From contig CP075494.1 of assembly GCA_021613535.1 (NCBI GenBank), forward strand, positions 14,880,001 through 14,944,000: a stretch of DNA of 64,000 nucleotides. The letters are read 5' to 3'. The translations under genes were made by a program, and so were the position numbers. Shown here one piece after another: positions 6,339 to 14,109 of this stretch. Numbering within the stretch: position 1 is the first letter of the stretch; the number at the start of each line of letters is the position of its first letter. A model generated the notes under the pieces. It ran no database searches. It worked only from the letters and a program-made list of their open reading frames with translations, and was not told the DNA's origin. The stretch is from Adineta vaga. Lineage: Eukaryota; Animalia; Rotifera.

Positions 6339-6800
6339 TTACATATGAGATTGATGTTCTTGTTCTTGAAAGAATTTATCCAATGCATCTTCAATTTGAG
6401 TTTTAATTTCATCATTTAATTGAACGAATGTTGCTGGTTTTGATTTATTCAAAGCATTTTGTTCAATCGATAAAATCAATGGTTTTGTAAGAGTATTCAC
6501 CGAATCTTTACCCATTTTTTTTTCCAAATTTTTCAAAGCAATATCTAATGCACGAGATGGAATGTGTGAAAATGTTGTGGGATTCTTAATCAGTATTAAT
6601 AACATAGCATGAACAAGTTGATCAGCATCAGATTTAATTAAGTAAAAATAACGATGAAGAATTTCTTTTGCTTGTTCAAATGTTTGATCAGTTGATAAAT
6701 CTTGAGGAACATTAATTTGTTTCGTTAATTTTTCTTGTACAGGTTTCATTGAAACAAGACCAATAAGAATTGAAATAACAATGATATATGTAGTGAACAT
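6339..6800 (-). CDS. Small secreted helical protein of unknown function
   Basis: 153-aa single-exon ORF with an N-terminal signal peptide (MFTTYIIVISILIGLVSM) and plausible coding composition. Confidence 0.65.
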   Translation of the reverse strand: MFTTYIIVISILIGLVSMKPVQEKLTKQINVPQDLSTDQTFEQAKEILHRYFYLIKSDADQLVHAMLLILIKNPTTFSHIPSRALDIALKNLEKKMGKDSVNTLTKPLILSIEQNALNKSKPATFVQLNDEIKTQIEDALDKFFQEQEHQSHM

Positions 6801-7958: not shown

Positions 7959-10900
7959 TTAAAATAGTTCTTTTTTATAAACAAATCCATATTGACGACA
8001 TTTCTTTGTTAATGTTGTTGATAATGCTGGTGGTCCACAATAAAATACGGAAATTTTTCCTTTCTTTTGATTTGATAAATCTGAAAATACCTAAAGGAAA
8101 AAAGATAAAACGCTTTCAAACATATGAATAGGAACATTTGGAGCACAGTGCCCTTTACGTATTTTGTACTCAATATACATTGAATATTATTTAAAAAAAT
8201 GTTATTTAAACAGGAAGTATACTTGGAATCTCTTACAGTACGTAAAGAAATAGTGAAGGTGAAGATCATTTGAACGTTGATAAACAGAAACGTCATACCT
8301 GTTTTTTGCTTAAGAGAATTCTTCGGGGGATGAACAGGAAGATCAGATTATCTTGTACGTGTTAGATTACTGTGGATCAAAATCTACCTATATATTATTT
8401 ATAACTTGAACGCAATAGAATTTCGATGATAAAATGAACAAAATGTCAGAAGAAATTGCTCAAGTGTCTATGTTTACGTTCGAAGTGTTCTATCTTCCTT
8501 TCTAATTTTACGCTTTATCATTTCCGAATAGTTTATCATTGATTGAAAAACCTTTTCAAAGTAATTTACTCAAAAAAGAAAGAGGTAAGACCTTGAGATT
8601 CTCGTTTATAACTATAAATAGTTCTGAATACGAGAATAAAAATTATCAATCAGATTGTTTTATCTCTGAAATTTTAAAATAATCATAAATGTAATGTAAT
8701 CTATTTTCACACCCAACGTCCTTTTGACAGAACTTGAACTTCTGTGTGACGCTTCTCATTCATTAGTCTATAAAAAAAACTCTTTGAAGATGTTCTTGTC
8801 GATCAAACGACATTTGGTTCTTTGATCAATTATTTTTATTCTACATTTCCTTATGTTTTTAATTCATCTGTTTTTTGTCCAAAGCAGAATGTCACTTTTC
8901 TAACATTTTGTTACCTGATCCCAATCGGGTCGACCATGTTTAGTTCGTTGTCGAAGACTATCTACTGCATCACAATTCGCAGCATTTTCTCGTCCAATTA
9001 AATCCAAGGAAAGATAAACATTCAATGCTTTTAAATCTGCTGCTGATTTGGCACTTGTAACATAGAGATGAACTTCAAGTAAAGATCCTTTATCAGAATT
9101 TTGTCTTAAACGTTGCTGTTCAATTTCCATTCGTGCTAATAAACTAATAAACCATTCAAGTGAACGTTGTTCACGAGTAACCCAAATGAAATCTACCTAA
9201 AGATAAAAACAATTTTTCTTTTTTTTTCGAAGAGAAAACAATCAATCTCTACTTTTTTAACAAATGGTTCATCATTTTGTGGATTATCCCAAATATAATC
9301 GCAATTTGGACATTTATGTCGAAGATTTCGATAACGACACATAATACTTTGTAAAATAGATGCAAATGGTGTAATACCAATACCAGCAGCAATTAAAACA
9401 GCATGTTCAGCTTCAAAGATATGTTGAGATGGTGCACCATATGGTCCATCAATTAAAATCTAGATAAATCAAATAGTTTCCTTTTTTTCATCACAAATCA
9501 AAAGAAATTTTATCGTTTTAATTACTTGTAAATCTTCTCGATCATTGAATTGAAGTGAATTCATTTGTATTCGATTATGATTTTGATACATACGTAAATA
9601 ACCAAGTGCATCGGATAAACGTGAATCATTGAAAGCATTTTCTTGTTGATCCTCATTCATTGATGGTGTATTCGATATGCGTAAACAATAATCACCAACA
9701 GGCGGAACAGATAGAAGATTATTTTGTTTGTGTGGTAATACAGAAACATTTTCCTCAATTGTCTCTTGAATTTTATGAACATCAGTAAGAATTGATGCAT
9801 TAGTTGAATGTAAATGATTTCGATCATATAAAGTAACCGATGAATGACATGAAGGTGATAATTTTGTTTGAAATCGAACTTGTGGTAAAGATACTGAACT
9901 ACTTTTTGGTTTAATTTCATCACTTGTTCGTACTGATGAACGTAATCGACAATCATTTTTATTGGAATCAATTGAAGAACTTGTTTCATCAGATTTTGAA
10001 CCACGTAATTCATTTATATAAGCTTGTGACATTCGAGAACGCATTGATGTACGAAGATGTATATGGCTATTATCATCAAGTAAAACGCCGTGATCTTGTT
10101 GTAATTTCGTTCGAAATAGATCATAAACACGTCGTGTCCAATGGCCACAAGCACGAACATGAAGCCAAATGTTATCTAAAAAAAATATAAATTGATAATA
10201 TTCAATTTGAGATCGAATCGATCTATTACCTTTATGTTCTGGAGCACTACTAATACTAAATGGATGCCATTCAAAACTTGCAACGGCAGGAATATTGATA
10301 TAAATATAATCACCAGGTTTATAGTTAAATTTTCTTGGTTTATTAATAACTAAATGAAGAACCTAATCATATGAGAAAAGAATTGAATTAAAATTCGATT
10401 TGAACATAGAAGAAGAAAAAAAGACTTTTACTTGAGATGGTAATAAAATTGCTTCCATAATGAAAGTTTCTCCATGTTTATTCGATCGAGATTTATGATA
10501 ACGTTGAATTTTTTCAATTACATATAAAATTCCAGGTAACATTAACCATTTCCAAAAATTAGGTCCATGTACAAGCATAATAATTAACCAAGGAAGAGTT
10601 AACATATGACACCAATAAAATAACTAAATCAATCGAAATTAATCTTTCTTTTCATCAATAAATCACTTCTTACTTGAAAATAACCACTCTTTCGAACAAA
10701 TGGTAAACACATTACATAGAAAATAGCTCCTAAAATGAATACAATCACACCAGTTATATATCCAAGACCTAATTTTGATGTAACAAGTGCATCAATATAA
10801 TTATGATGTGTATCACGATATGGTTCTAAAATAGTTGTGCAAAAAGAAAATGATTTTCTCAAAACGGAAAACATCGAAATTGAACTTACTACATCGAGCA

Positions 10901-12939
10901 ATACATTTAGCTTCTGTTCTGAAATTATTCAAATTTCCTCCACAACCATGATATCGAAAATGTTCACATTTATTTAACACGGCATCATAATGATATTTTG
11001 TTGTTAAGATCATTTCATTTGATGATGATTCATTAAAAAGACGATAATGAAGAGTACTTGAATTACTATGACATGGAAAACCACAATCTCTCGGTAATGA
11101 ACAAGCATAAAAGACATGACCTAAACGAAAACATAAATACAAATAGGACTAAAAATTTATTCTACCTAAATAAGCTAAATGAGCTAATGTATGAAGAATT
11201 GATTCTACTAGAATGATAATTCCAATAATCTTATGTGTATCAATATGATGATCAAGAGGAAGAAGAATTCCACCACCTTTTGTTCGTAACCATGTGATAT
11301 GTTTTCGAAGCATTAAAAGAAGTACTAATGCACAATTAAAATTTAACATTCCACCTATTTTAAAGAAAAGATCTATTCGAATCTTGAGAAACAAAAACAA
11401 ATTCATGATTTTCTACCATTAATTCGTGCGATAATGACAAGAAAATGAGCTTGTTGTTGAATAACATAAATTCGTAAGACATTGATACATATACAAAAGC
11501 AAATAAATAAATATAATGACCAAAAAAAGACTAGATCAAAATTATTCCGTATCCAACTACGAATTGTTAATGAACGTTTATAACTTTTACTAATCGATGT
11601 TGGTTTTGGTTGAATCCAATTACTTGTACTAGAAAGGCAAAATATTTCAATAACGAATCGAATACTTCTTTTTCTATACCTAAGTGAAAGAACTTTAAAT
11701 AAATGTTCATTTCGTTTAAATGCACTGGTTAATTCTTCTAAACTTATATCGCCAGATCGATCGACATCGGTTTCTTGAAATAAAGTTGCGGTTAATTCCG
11801 CTAATGTTTCTTCTAAATCCAACGATGGTGTTTGTTCAAGAAAACAACGAAGAATTAATTTCATTTCATTAAAATCAATAATTCCATCATCTAAATTTTC
11901 GAACAACATCTATCTGAAATCTTCATTCATATTTACTTACCATTATGATCAAAAATTTTAAAAAGAAATTCTACTTTTTCCATATCATTCGCTTCAATTA
12001 TAAATCCCATTCGTTGTATAAGAATTTCTAATTTAATTCGCCCGATTTTTTCTGTATCAAAATAATTAAATAAACATTCAGCTAGTTGTGGCTAAAGAGA
12101 AACGACTAAAACATTCGAACAAACGTGTAGATTCAATACAGACCACTTTAAAATAAAAACTATTCGTAAATGTTTCTAAATCCATACTATCTTCTATTGT
12201 AGAATGATTTCGACGTTTACTAACTATCATTTGAAATTCATAAGTCAACCATGAAAGCCATTTCATATCTGTTTTAACACTGAAAAACAAAACAAGAAAA
12301 TGTTTTTAAAAAATCAAAAAACTCGTTGAAGTAAACTTCGAAACAGCACGAAGAATATCCATGAATTCCATGACGGTTAATAGATTTGTTTCACCAAGGA
12401 ATAATAAAGCAAATTGTCGACGAAACTAGAATTATAAAAATGAATTTTATCAATCGATCTTTTGCGTTCGTTGAAACTACCGAAGAATCTTCAAATAATT
12501 TACAAAAGTTATTTAATGATAATGAACTATTTTCAGGGGACATATGTCTGAAACCATGTATAAATGCTTCCAATGATCGAATATCTTTTGTACGATTTGC
12601 TGTTCTAAAAACAAAGACGAAAAAAAAACCATCAAAACAAAAGTCAATGGAATTCAGATAGGAAATATACTCAGCAACTTTATATATGGATCCAATCCAT
12701 TCCGATTCGGATAATAAACCACTTGAATCACGATCAAATAAACAAAAAAGTGTTTCTATTAATTGCTGCGAAATAAAATCGAAGAATTTCAAAGATTGAA
12801 TGGAATAATATTATCTTACACGTTGTCGAAGTAGATGCATCAATTCTTGATAACTGAGATGTGTACGAGCATGAAGATGACGTTGCCATTTTTGTAACAG
12901 AGCTTCTTTATTAGATGAAGGAATCGATGTAGATCTCAT
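7959..12939 (-). CDS. NOX5: NOX5-type Ca2+-activated NADPH oxidase with extended EF-hand region and Kunitz insert (multi-exon)
   Basis: EF-hands (FDRDSSGLLSESE, FDHNDDGIIDFNE, TDVDRSGDISLEE). Heme-His TM3 HKIIG...HTLAH. FAD motif WHPFSISSAP. NADPH motifs IDGPYGAP and AAGIGITPFAS. KHGRPDWD, then last exon 7959-8090 VFYCGPPAL...FVYKKELF*. Probable ATG at 12939. Confidence 0.93.
10890..11120 (-). other. Kunitz/BPTI-domain exon inside the NOX5 gene (231 nt, phase 1-1)
   Basis: CSLPRDCGFPC...KYHYDAVLNKCEHFRYHGCGGNLNNFRTEAKCIARC, flanked by a tttag acceptor and a gtaag donor, in frame between the TM3 and TM4 exons. Confidence 0.88.
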
Positions 12940-14109
12940 TATATAAACTACAATGACTTAGTCTAGAAGTGATCGAAGAACATTTCATATATATATTACG
13001 ATTCTCGTCTATTCTTTCAGATGAAAGCAATTCACCATATATGGTTAACCATAATCGAAAAGAAGAATGAAACGAGGGAAAGTGAATGTATTTTTCGTTA
13101 GTATACAATGTTGTAGTATCAGAAAAATTTTGAAGAAAAAATCTTTTGGAATCAGATACTTTGAAAAAGTCAATTTTTCCGAAGAAAATCGTCATTCTTC
13201 AATGACCTTTCTGTGTACCCTTGAGATAGAATTCTATCGTCGAGAATGAACAAAACATGTGATTAGTCATTTCTATATAAAATAATAGTGTTGAATAGTT
13301 AAGTCCGTCATGATGATAATGTATGATTTATCACAATTATCTGTCTAGGCCATTCTAAACGAGACGAAATTTCGATGAATTTCTCTAAACATTACGTCAT
13401 CTTTTCATTTCTATTTCTTTGCACCGAACGGAAAGTTCAGAATCATTGTAAGATCGATGACCTTTCAGTAAAGAAAACGAAGACTATTCGACTATAATGA
13501 TTGAATTAGTTTTGATTGTGATTTGTTCATATAACCATATTTATTTTTTGTTCGCTCTTTCTTTTATAGAAAAAAAAACAATATTTTATGTGTCATGGAC
13601 ATGAAGAGAAGAAAACAAGAACACGAGACAACAAAAAAAAAAGAAAACGAATAAAGAGAAAACTAGAACGTTCAATGTTTAGCAAGTAGACAAAAAATGA
13701 AAAAGAAAATGAGAGAAAAGAATTCTATGCATTACGCAAGACACATAAAGAAAAGTGATTAAAATTGTTATTTTGATTTTGTTTCGTTTTTTCATAGATG
13801 AAGATTTACATACAACAGAAAGGCACCGGTGATCGGTGACTTTTGTTGTCGCGTTAATTTTCTTCTGGTTTTTGAAATTGCTGAACATCGGAGAAAATCG
13901 AGAGACAAATACGAAGTAGAAGAGAAGAAAAAGAGAAGCAATAAATGCGCACAAATAACGACATCAAAATTTAAAGAAAATGTAAGAGTAGAAGAAGAAG
14001 AAGAAGTACGAACACCGGTCATGAAGAAGAAAAAAAACGAAAAGAAAGATAATAAAACATTCGATATTTAAAAGTAAAATCATTTGTCAAATATTTTTTG
14101 CTTTATAAT

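Follow-up and report, generated by a model that had tools for sequence, protein, structure and literature searches.

A Kunitz domain in extracellular loop C of the NOX5 NADPH oxidases of bdelloid rotifers

The regulation of NADPH oxidases (NOX) is thought to take place on the cytosolic side, through EF-hands, phosphorylation and organiser subunits, and the outward loops of these enzymes are regarded as lids, short and glycosylated, that cover the O2-reducing haem. Additional extracellular structures that lie above the outer haem and shape the product or the partners are known in DUOX1 and DUOX2, which carry an N-terminal peroxidase-homology ectodomain that is attached via an extra transmembrane (TM) helix and needs DUOXA, and in NOX4, whose extended E-loop is a loop extension and not a domain. 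Here we describe a NOX5-type gene of the bdelloid rotifer Adineta vaga, found in a stretch of 64,000 nucleotides (nt) of contig CP075494.1 (positions 14,880,001 to 14,944,000 of the forward strand; the whole stretch is called the window below), in which an exon for a Kunitz/BPTI domain lies between the exons for TM3 and TM4. The principle is the same as in DUOX1/2 and the NOX4 E-loop, but in the bdelloid NOX5 it is an unrelated, independently folding domain that has been spliced into loop C.

Compared with canonical NOX5 (the Cylindrospermum TM domain, 5o0t, and human NOX5, 8u85), the bdelloid gene has the same EF-hands, six TM helices, haem-ligating His pairs (H-x13-H and H-x12-H), FAD_binding_8 region with the motif HPFSISS, NAD_binding_6 region and usual NOX C-terminus, and the bdelloid genes fall inside the animal NOX5 tree. 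The difference lies in loop C, which is a short linker of about 20–35 residues in Brachionus, arthropods and vertebrates, whereas in bdelloids it carries a complete Kunitz domain of 58–77 residues. The exons of the window were searched singly, not as a joined protein, and the ortholog of Adineta ricciae (P0169) served as the full-length proxy; by tblastn, residues 1–1062 of this ortholog map to 12942..8906 with all exons unbroken. Membership in NOX5 is indicated by the EF-hand region in two upstream exons of the window gene, with matches to Pfam EF-hand_1, EF-hand_6 and EF-hand_7 at 11406–11909 (E = 4.9e-07) and 12394–12792 (both on the minus strand), and by orthologs with full sets of EF-hands. 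Both bis-His pairs of the ferric-reductase TM domain can be read from the exon translations, and the His positions are invariant in the alignment; the two haem-ligating His of TM3 form the H-x13-H pair, and the His of the outer haem stands 9 residues short of the end of its exon, which terminates in HTLAHLAYL. The FAD-binding motif HPFSISS lies within the open frame 10362..9472 (minus strand), NAD_binding_6 was matched on one single exon, and the orthologs score strongly for the FAD and NADPH domains. The GC content of the window is 31%, and the closest proteins are from Adineta species. This EF-hand NOX5 gene, which belongs to a bdelloid of the Adineta type, is intact, and its features are listed in Table 1.

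A preliminary description of this stretch had proposed that a 231-nt exon with phase-1 introns on both sides inserts a Kunitz domain in frame between TM3 (HTLAHLAYL) and TM4 (GYITGVIVFIL) of a NOX5. The splice sites and coordinates of this exon hold, its first two bases complete a codon and its last base opens another, its 76 whole codons (10891–11118, minus strand) are open, and the translations of the flanking exons agree with the in-frame placement. The Pfam family PF00014 (Kunitz_BPTI) is recognized in it with E = 2.3e-14 and 53.8 bits, as compared with a gathering cut-off of 21, and 61 solved Kunitz chains match the exon at E <= 1e-3, the closest PDB sequences being SmCI, boophilin and bikunin. 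This Pfam score, and the fact that at least 10 independent bdelloid loci have conserved the exon, exclude a chance match. The signature FxYxGCxGNxNNF and all six Kunitz Cys of the proposal are present, but the exon encodes seven Cys in total. The six Kunitz Cys, which could form the three Kunitz disulfides, are invariant in all 13 aligned modules, and are spaced 9/34/7/12/3 in the window copy and 9/19–35/7/12/3 in its relatives, as against the canonical 8/15/7/12/3; that is, the last three spacings are canonical, whereas Cys1–Cys2 is 9 (8 in BPTI) and Cys2–Cys3 is 34 (15 in BPTI). Because these first two spacings are non-canonical, the window exon aligns only to profile positions 15–52 of PF00014; the Didymodactylos ortholog aligns to positions 1–52. 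The other positions that are invariant in the 13 modules (V2, F3, L8, G13, Y42, F54, Y56, G58, G61, N62, N64, F66 and R75) are fold-core rather than contact positions, and the surface positions drift.

The extra residues between Cys2 and Cys3 stand directly after Cys2, at the P1–P4' sites of an inhibitor, and in the window copy they include the sequons NSS and NES. Across the modules this insert amounts to 4–20 extra residues after P1/P1', is variable in length and usually bears a sequon; altogether, N-x-S/T sequons occur in 12 of the 13 modules. The P1 residue is His in the window copy and His, Gln, Asn or Pro across its relatives, never Lys or Arg, and Gly36 is replaced, position 36 being His, Phe, Leu or Lys. 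The module therefore departs from a canonical inhibitor, which has an intact reactive loop with Lys/Arg or Leu/Met/Phe at P1, a small residue at P1', uninterrupted P2'–P4' sites and Gly36-Gly37.

With the Kunitz/BPTI inhibitors (BPTI, APP-KPI, TFPI and bikunin), the bdelloid module has in common PF00014, the six Cys, the signature F-x-Y-x-G-C-x-G-N-x-N-N-F, the spacings 7/12/3 and the predicted fold. It differs from them in its non-basic P1, the insert after P1/P1', the replaced Gly36 and the Cys1–Cys2 spacing of 9, and both of its ends are joined to the polytopic membrane protein in which it lies. Like the bdelloid module, the KPI domain of APP corresponds to a single symmetric exon within the ectodomain of a membrane protein. 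In the non-inhibitory Kunitz domains (the C5 domain of collagen VI alpha-3, 2knt/1knt, and the dendrotoxin and conkunitzin-type toxins) the same fold is used as a structural or binding module; however, these are matrix or secreted proteins, and none is embedded in a membrane loop of an enzyme.

The seventh Cys is kept in five of five sequences of the A-type (the type of the window gene), namely those of the window, A. ricciae, A. steineri and two environmental contigs, and it is absent from the B-type, Rotaria and Didymodactylos copies. It would be without a partner if the canonical six pair as usual, and a free thiol beside a source of reactive oxygen species (ROS) might serve as a redox switch or link two molecules.

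The introns around the Kunitz exon are conserved in other bdelloid loci. Neither the position nor the phase of the downstream intron (Kunitz–TM4) varies among the ten loci examined. The position and phase of the upstream intron are shared by the window gene, its ohnolog on contig C2, both the A and the B copy of A. ricciae, Rotaria magnacalcarata, Didymodactylos carnosus and the environmental contigs. Of the bdelloid loci examined, this intron is gone only in the two copies of A. steineri, in which TM3 and Kunitz form one exon (L024:2080-2502, A-type; L028:1955-2377, B-type), so that the module cannot be skipped by itself in this species. Such a precise loss of the upstream intron is expected if the spliced message contained the module. 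The double loss itself may have arisen in parallel or through gene conversion involving the two ohnologs.

Selection on the exon was estimated with codon models per exon, over 9–10 loci. The maximum-likelihood (ML) ratio of nonsynonymous to synonymous rates (omega) of the Kunitz exon is 0.19 (58 ungapped codons), and omega = 1 is rejected (twice the difference in log-likelihood, 2dlnL = 92; p ~7e-22); the values of the TM3, TM4 and TM5 exons are 0.06, 0.09 and 0.05, respectively. All pairwise omega values of the Kunitz exon are below 1 (0.12–0.73), and the per-exon ML estimates are preferred because pairwise synonymous divergence (dS, NG86) is erratic in these short AT-rich exons. The Kunitz module is constrained, although two to four times less tightly than the membrane core, and the exon at 11120..10890 (minus strand) is genuinely coding and has long been under selection.

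Public gene models agree with this structure. In about 40 of about 40 models from eight other bdelloid species, TM3, Kunitz and TM4 are spliced exactly as the preliminary description had proposed for loop C, and none skips the module. The same description had raised the possibility of isoforms with and without Kunitz; skipping would indeed keep the frame, but the exon fusion in A. steineri and the lack of any public model that skips the module speak against it, and a conserved isoform without Kunitz is unlikely.

A search with the TM3 exon led to a protein of D. carnosus (A0A814SMJ7; 733 amino acids) with Kunitz between TM3 and TM4. With this protein as the query, the occurrence of PF00014 was inspected in the best 120 of 345 NOX5-like matches. 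PF00014 exists in every bdelloid NOX5 cluster (A. steineri, A. ricciae, R. magnacalcarata, R. socialis and R. sp. Silwood1), and further Kunitz-bearing species among the cluster members are R. sordida and R. sp. Silwood2, whereas among these best 120 matches PF00014 is absent from the NOX5 of the monogonont Brachionus calyciflorus and of arthropods, molluscs, hemichordates and vertebrates. The full-length cluster members, which were checked for transcript-derived proteins (Logan and TSA), all come from genome annotation. The environmental contigs L018–L022 have the same order of TM3, Kunitz and TM4; two fragments of open reading frames led to them in a word-indexed search with the 76-amino-acid exon, which covers only proteins of 42–133 amino acids. 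A region-restricted search with the Kunitz part of P0169 gave three candidates and is too narrow to inform on distant phyla.

An ML tree computed from 33 NOX5 proteins groups all nine Kunitz-bearing rows in a single clade with a support of 100 (SH-like approximate likelihood ratio test, SH-aLRT), and the distribution can be explained by one change. Automatic filtering had removed the Kunitz columns, which are present in less than half of the rows, and the window gene, which is no row of the tree, is placed via its orthologs. Within protostome NOX5, the bdelloids are the sister group of the clade with Brachionus, so that through its orthologs the window gene is placed in animal NOX5. Within the bdelloid clade Didymodactylos branches first, followed by a split of the Adineta A-type, to which the window gene belongs, from the Adineta B-type plus Rotaria. 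The Kunitz domain was inserted once, on the stem of the bdelloids sampled, and every NOX5 sampled from them has kept it.

The A. vaga genome (100.8 Mb in 6 contigs) contains exactly two NOX5-type loci, the window gene on C5 and its ohnolog on C2 (L010), and both carry Kunitz. A NOX5 paralog without Kunitz was looked for in this genome and not found. The ohnolog is 81% identical to the window gene in the TM3 exon, 67% in the TM4 exon and about 45% in the Kunitz exon; it has the same order of TM3, Kunitz and TM4 with the same two phase-1 positions, and the six Cys are spaced 9/19/7/12/3. Its Kunitz exon (L010:1730-1912) has 19 residues between Cys2 and Cys3 as compared with 34 in the window, and it is the only one of the 13 modules without a sequon. 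The two ohnologs of one animal differ most in this Cys2–Cys3 insert. Five other TM3-like loci were rejected as NOX5; they look DUOX-like, and their C-terminal domain is only 36–38% identical to Brachionus NOX5. In these five loci (L011–L015, at C6:7342837, C3:8872181, C3:18172229, C3:5686141 and C6:11621009), TM3 is in large single open frames after EF-hand-like sequence, and no Kunitz was seen in the frames read. Three tandem Kunitz-like frames (L003, L005 and L006) that are 43–44% identical to the window module lie within 1.5 kb on C4 (C4:4411439-4412918), with more single matches on C6 and C3; the tandem frames are candidate relatives or a candidate source of the shuffled exon.

The fold was modelled with AlphaFold2 on residues 335–612 of P0169 (TM domain plus Kunitz) with an alignment of 62 sequences; this protein is not that of the window itself, and its Kunitz exon is 76% identical to that of the window. 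The model has a mean predicted local distance difference test score (pLDDT) of 84.7 and a predicted template-modelling score (pTM) of 0.80; pLDDT is 84–90 in the Kunitz hairpin and C-terminal helix and 50–62 in the insert. The predicted Kunitz core consists of strands 149–155 and 160–166 and helix 179–185. In Foldseek searches the TM part of the model matched the NOX5 TM domain 5o0t (TMt 0.82, root-mean-square deviation (rmsd) 2.8) and also human NOX5, DUOX1 and NOX2, and the Kunitz part matched solved Kunitz structures (TMt 0.8–0.9, rmsd 1.4–1.7). The best structural match of the latter was collagen VI C5 (2knt, TMt 0.83, rmsd 1.5), in a close ranking that is no proof of kinship. The AlphaFold check suggested in the preliminary description thus recovers, as a prediction on the A. 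ricciae ortholog, both a NOX5 TM fold and a Kunitz fold.

As to the side of the membrane, we take the established NOX topology to hold here, with the EF-hands and the dehydrogenase in the cytosol and loops A, C and E outside, which makes loop C extracellular; the conserved Cys, and the sequons in nearly all modules, fit with this position. The module begins loop C, about 10 residues past the TM3 His that is expected to ligate the outer haem. By this topology, the Kunitz module sits on the O2-reducing side of the membrane, at the start of loop C.

Table 1. Features of the NOX5-type gene in the window, in the order of transcription
Feature	Position in window	Strand	Evidence and remarks
Whole coding sequence of the NOX5-type NADPH oxidase	12939..7959	-	ATG 12939-12937, stop 7961-7959; about 11 or more exons, short introns
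EF-hand exons (cytosolic N-terminal Ca2+-binding region) and TM1 exon	11418..12800	-	Pfam
TM2-TM3 exon, 189 nt, phase 1-1	11354..11166	-	Translation, weak Pfam Ferric_reduct match, splice sites
Intron between TM3 and Kunitz exons, 45 nt, phase 1	11165..11121	-	GTAGAA...TTTAG
Kunitz exon, 231 nt, phase 1-1	11120..10890	-	Acceptor AG 11122-11121, donor GTAAGT 10889-10884
Codon of seventh Cys, exon residue 12, motif R-D-C-G-F-P-C	11083..11085	-	Alignment, Cys counts
Intron between Kunitz and TM4 exons, 64 nt, phase 1	10889..10826	-	GTAAGT...TTTTAG
Exon of TM4 and remainder of loop C, 152 nt, phase 1-0	10825..10674	-	Contains GYITGVIVFIL
TM5-TM6 exon, to LLPSQ	10623..10432	-	Exon translation; second His pair H-x12-H
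Last exon	8090..7962	-	C-terminus of usual NOX type

Elsewhere in the gene, a Ser/Asn-rich low-complexity stretch of about 190 residues (9472–10044, minus strand) lies between the FAD- and NADPH-binding parts, in one large exon; it has no Pfam match, and it falls inside a high-scoring segment pair (10623..9247) that is 69% identical overall to the A. ricciae ortholog. The last intron (8091–8905, minus strand) is about 0.8 kb long, whereas the introns that were measured next to the Kunitz exon have 45–65 nt. Just downstream of the gene is an open frame of 153 amino acids (6339–6800, minus strand) with a hydrophobic, signal-peptide-like N-terminus.

As the whole explanation we favour, with a probability of about 0.6, a selected, bdelloid-specific NOX5 module that is not a classical inhibitor and whose most likely role is to cap the outer haem or to offer a docking surface above it. 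In this explanation the module would be a rigid, glycosylated, disulfide-locked and oxidation-resistant extracellular structure, which could stabilise the O2-reducing pocket or shape the exit of the product, or could link the oxidase to a partner outside the cell and thereby confine the delivery of Ca2+-triggered ROS to one place. Selection would preserve the disulfide-locked fold itself, and the module would be built into the enzyme and not be an optional isoform. Several points weigh against this explanation: some Kunitz domains with a non-basic P1 do inhibit proteases; the cap or docking role is read from features of the sequence, with a hypothetical partner; the packing of the module against the haem pocket is a prediction; the Kunitz exon of the window, when folded alone (AlphaFold2, 13 sequences), reached a pLDDT of 51 and was not used for the fold search; the presumed inclusion of the exon in mRNA is based on conservation, selection, the intron loss in A. 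steineri and the gene models of others; and seisonids and acanthocephalans are not knowingly among the sampled taxa.

Canonical inhibition of serine proteases is unlikely, because P1 is never basic, a variable insert follows P1/P1' and Gly36 is replaced, and the protease binding or sensing suggested in the preliminary description loses weight through the same three features, namely a P1 of His, Gln, Asn or Pro, an insert that usually carries N-glycosylation sites and the loss of Gly36. A working membrane-tethered inhibitor or sensor might still have an unusual specificity and couple an extracellular protease (of a pathogen, of prey or from a wound) to local ROS. Such a role would agree with the conservation of the fold and of all disulfide Cys, with the conserved primary loop before Cys2 (L8, D11 and G13), with the inhibitors SmCI, boophilin and bikunin as the closest PDB sequences, and with a module that evolves two to four times faster than the TM core, as expected of an arms-race interface; we nevertheless consider it improbable, since P1 differs even between close relatives, a variable and usually glycosylation-site-bearing insert takes the P2'–P4' place, bulky residues stand for Gly36 of the secondary loop, Cys1–Cys2 is 9 and not 8, and the invariant positions are those of the fold core. 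The module could instead tune the chemistry of the enzyme in the manner of the NOX4 E-loop or the DUOX ectodomain, by changing how the outer haem is reached or what becomes of superoxide (which could favour release of H2O2), or by redox gating through the extra Cys of the A-type. Its start about 10 residues past the outer-haem His would suit this, as would the pTM of 0.80 in the ortholog model, which would allow the module a fixed placement on the TM domain, and the retention of the seventh Cys throughout the A-type; however, catalytic or metal-binding residues are not evident, the B-type, Rotaria and Didymodactylos copies do without the extra Cys, and this role seems distinctly improbable.

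It might also be argued that the module has no function of its own, and is an entrenched passenger, a shuffled exon in a tolerant loop that is kept only because its loss would misfold loop C. The free drift of surface residues and insert length, the conserved positions that are almost all fold-core, and the C2 ohnolog, with its insert region shortened to 19 residues and its sequon lost, are what such a passenger would show. We think this very improbable in view of the six Cys, which all lineages and both ohnologs have kept from before the split of Didymodactylos onwards, the omega of 0.19, and the fact that no NOX5 copy has lost the module, though precise loss of the exon keeps the frame. That the stretch lies within one 340-nt intron and never enters mRNA, being a pseudo-exon or an annotation artefact, can hardly be credited, given the open frame, the consensus splice sites, the phase conserved in ten loci, the strong purifying selection and, in A. 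steineri, the continuity of the stretch with the coding exon of TM3.

A Kunitz-bearing NOX5 is apparently undescribed in the literature searched. A full-text search (NOX5 or NADPH oxidase with Kunitz or rotifer; bdelloid NADPH oxidase) found no paper describing the fusion, and a comparative paper on ROS genes that includes the NOX genes of A. vaga makes no mention of Kunitz. This agrees with the preliminary description, which knew of no NOX–Kunitz fusion, although the architecture sits unremarked in the protein databases; these already hold Kunitz-bearing proteins under names such as 'NADPH oxidase 5', and with such plain names the feature is easy to overlook.

A bolder version of the cap or docking surface would make the module a ligand-recognition or gating element and bdelloid NOX5 a receptor-like ROS generator, in which the binding of a partner or the oxidation of the extra Cys alters electron flow or product at the outer haem just beneath the module. 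The candidate ligands, bound on the fast-evolving glycosylated face, would be proteases, proteins of the matrix or eggshell, or microbial molecules. We regard this receptor-like role, together with such ligands, as speculative and doubtful; if true, it would be, to our knowledge, the first NOX with an output controlled from outside by a built-in binding domain.

A whole folding domain in the lid of a NOX, kept under selection, is a natural experiment on the extracellular face of these enzymes, with regard to control of the product, docking of partners and stability. It also provides a clean, datable case of exon shuffling into a polytopic membrane enzyme. In bdelloids, the module may bear on the handling of ROS, as in the survival of desiccation and radiation, or on cross-linking of the cuticle or egg envelope.

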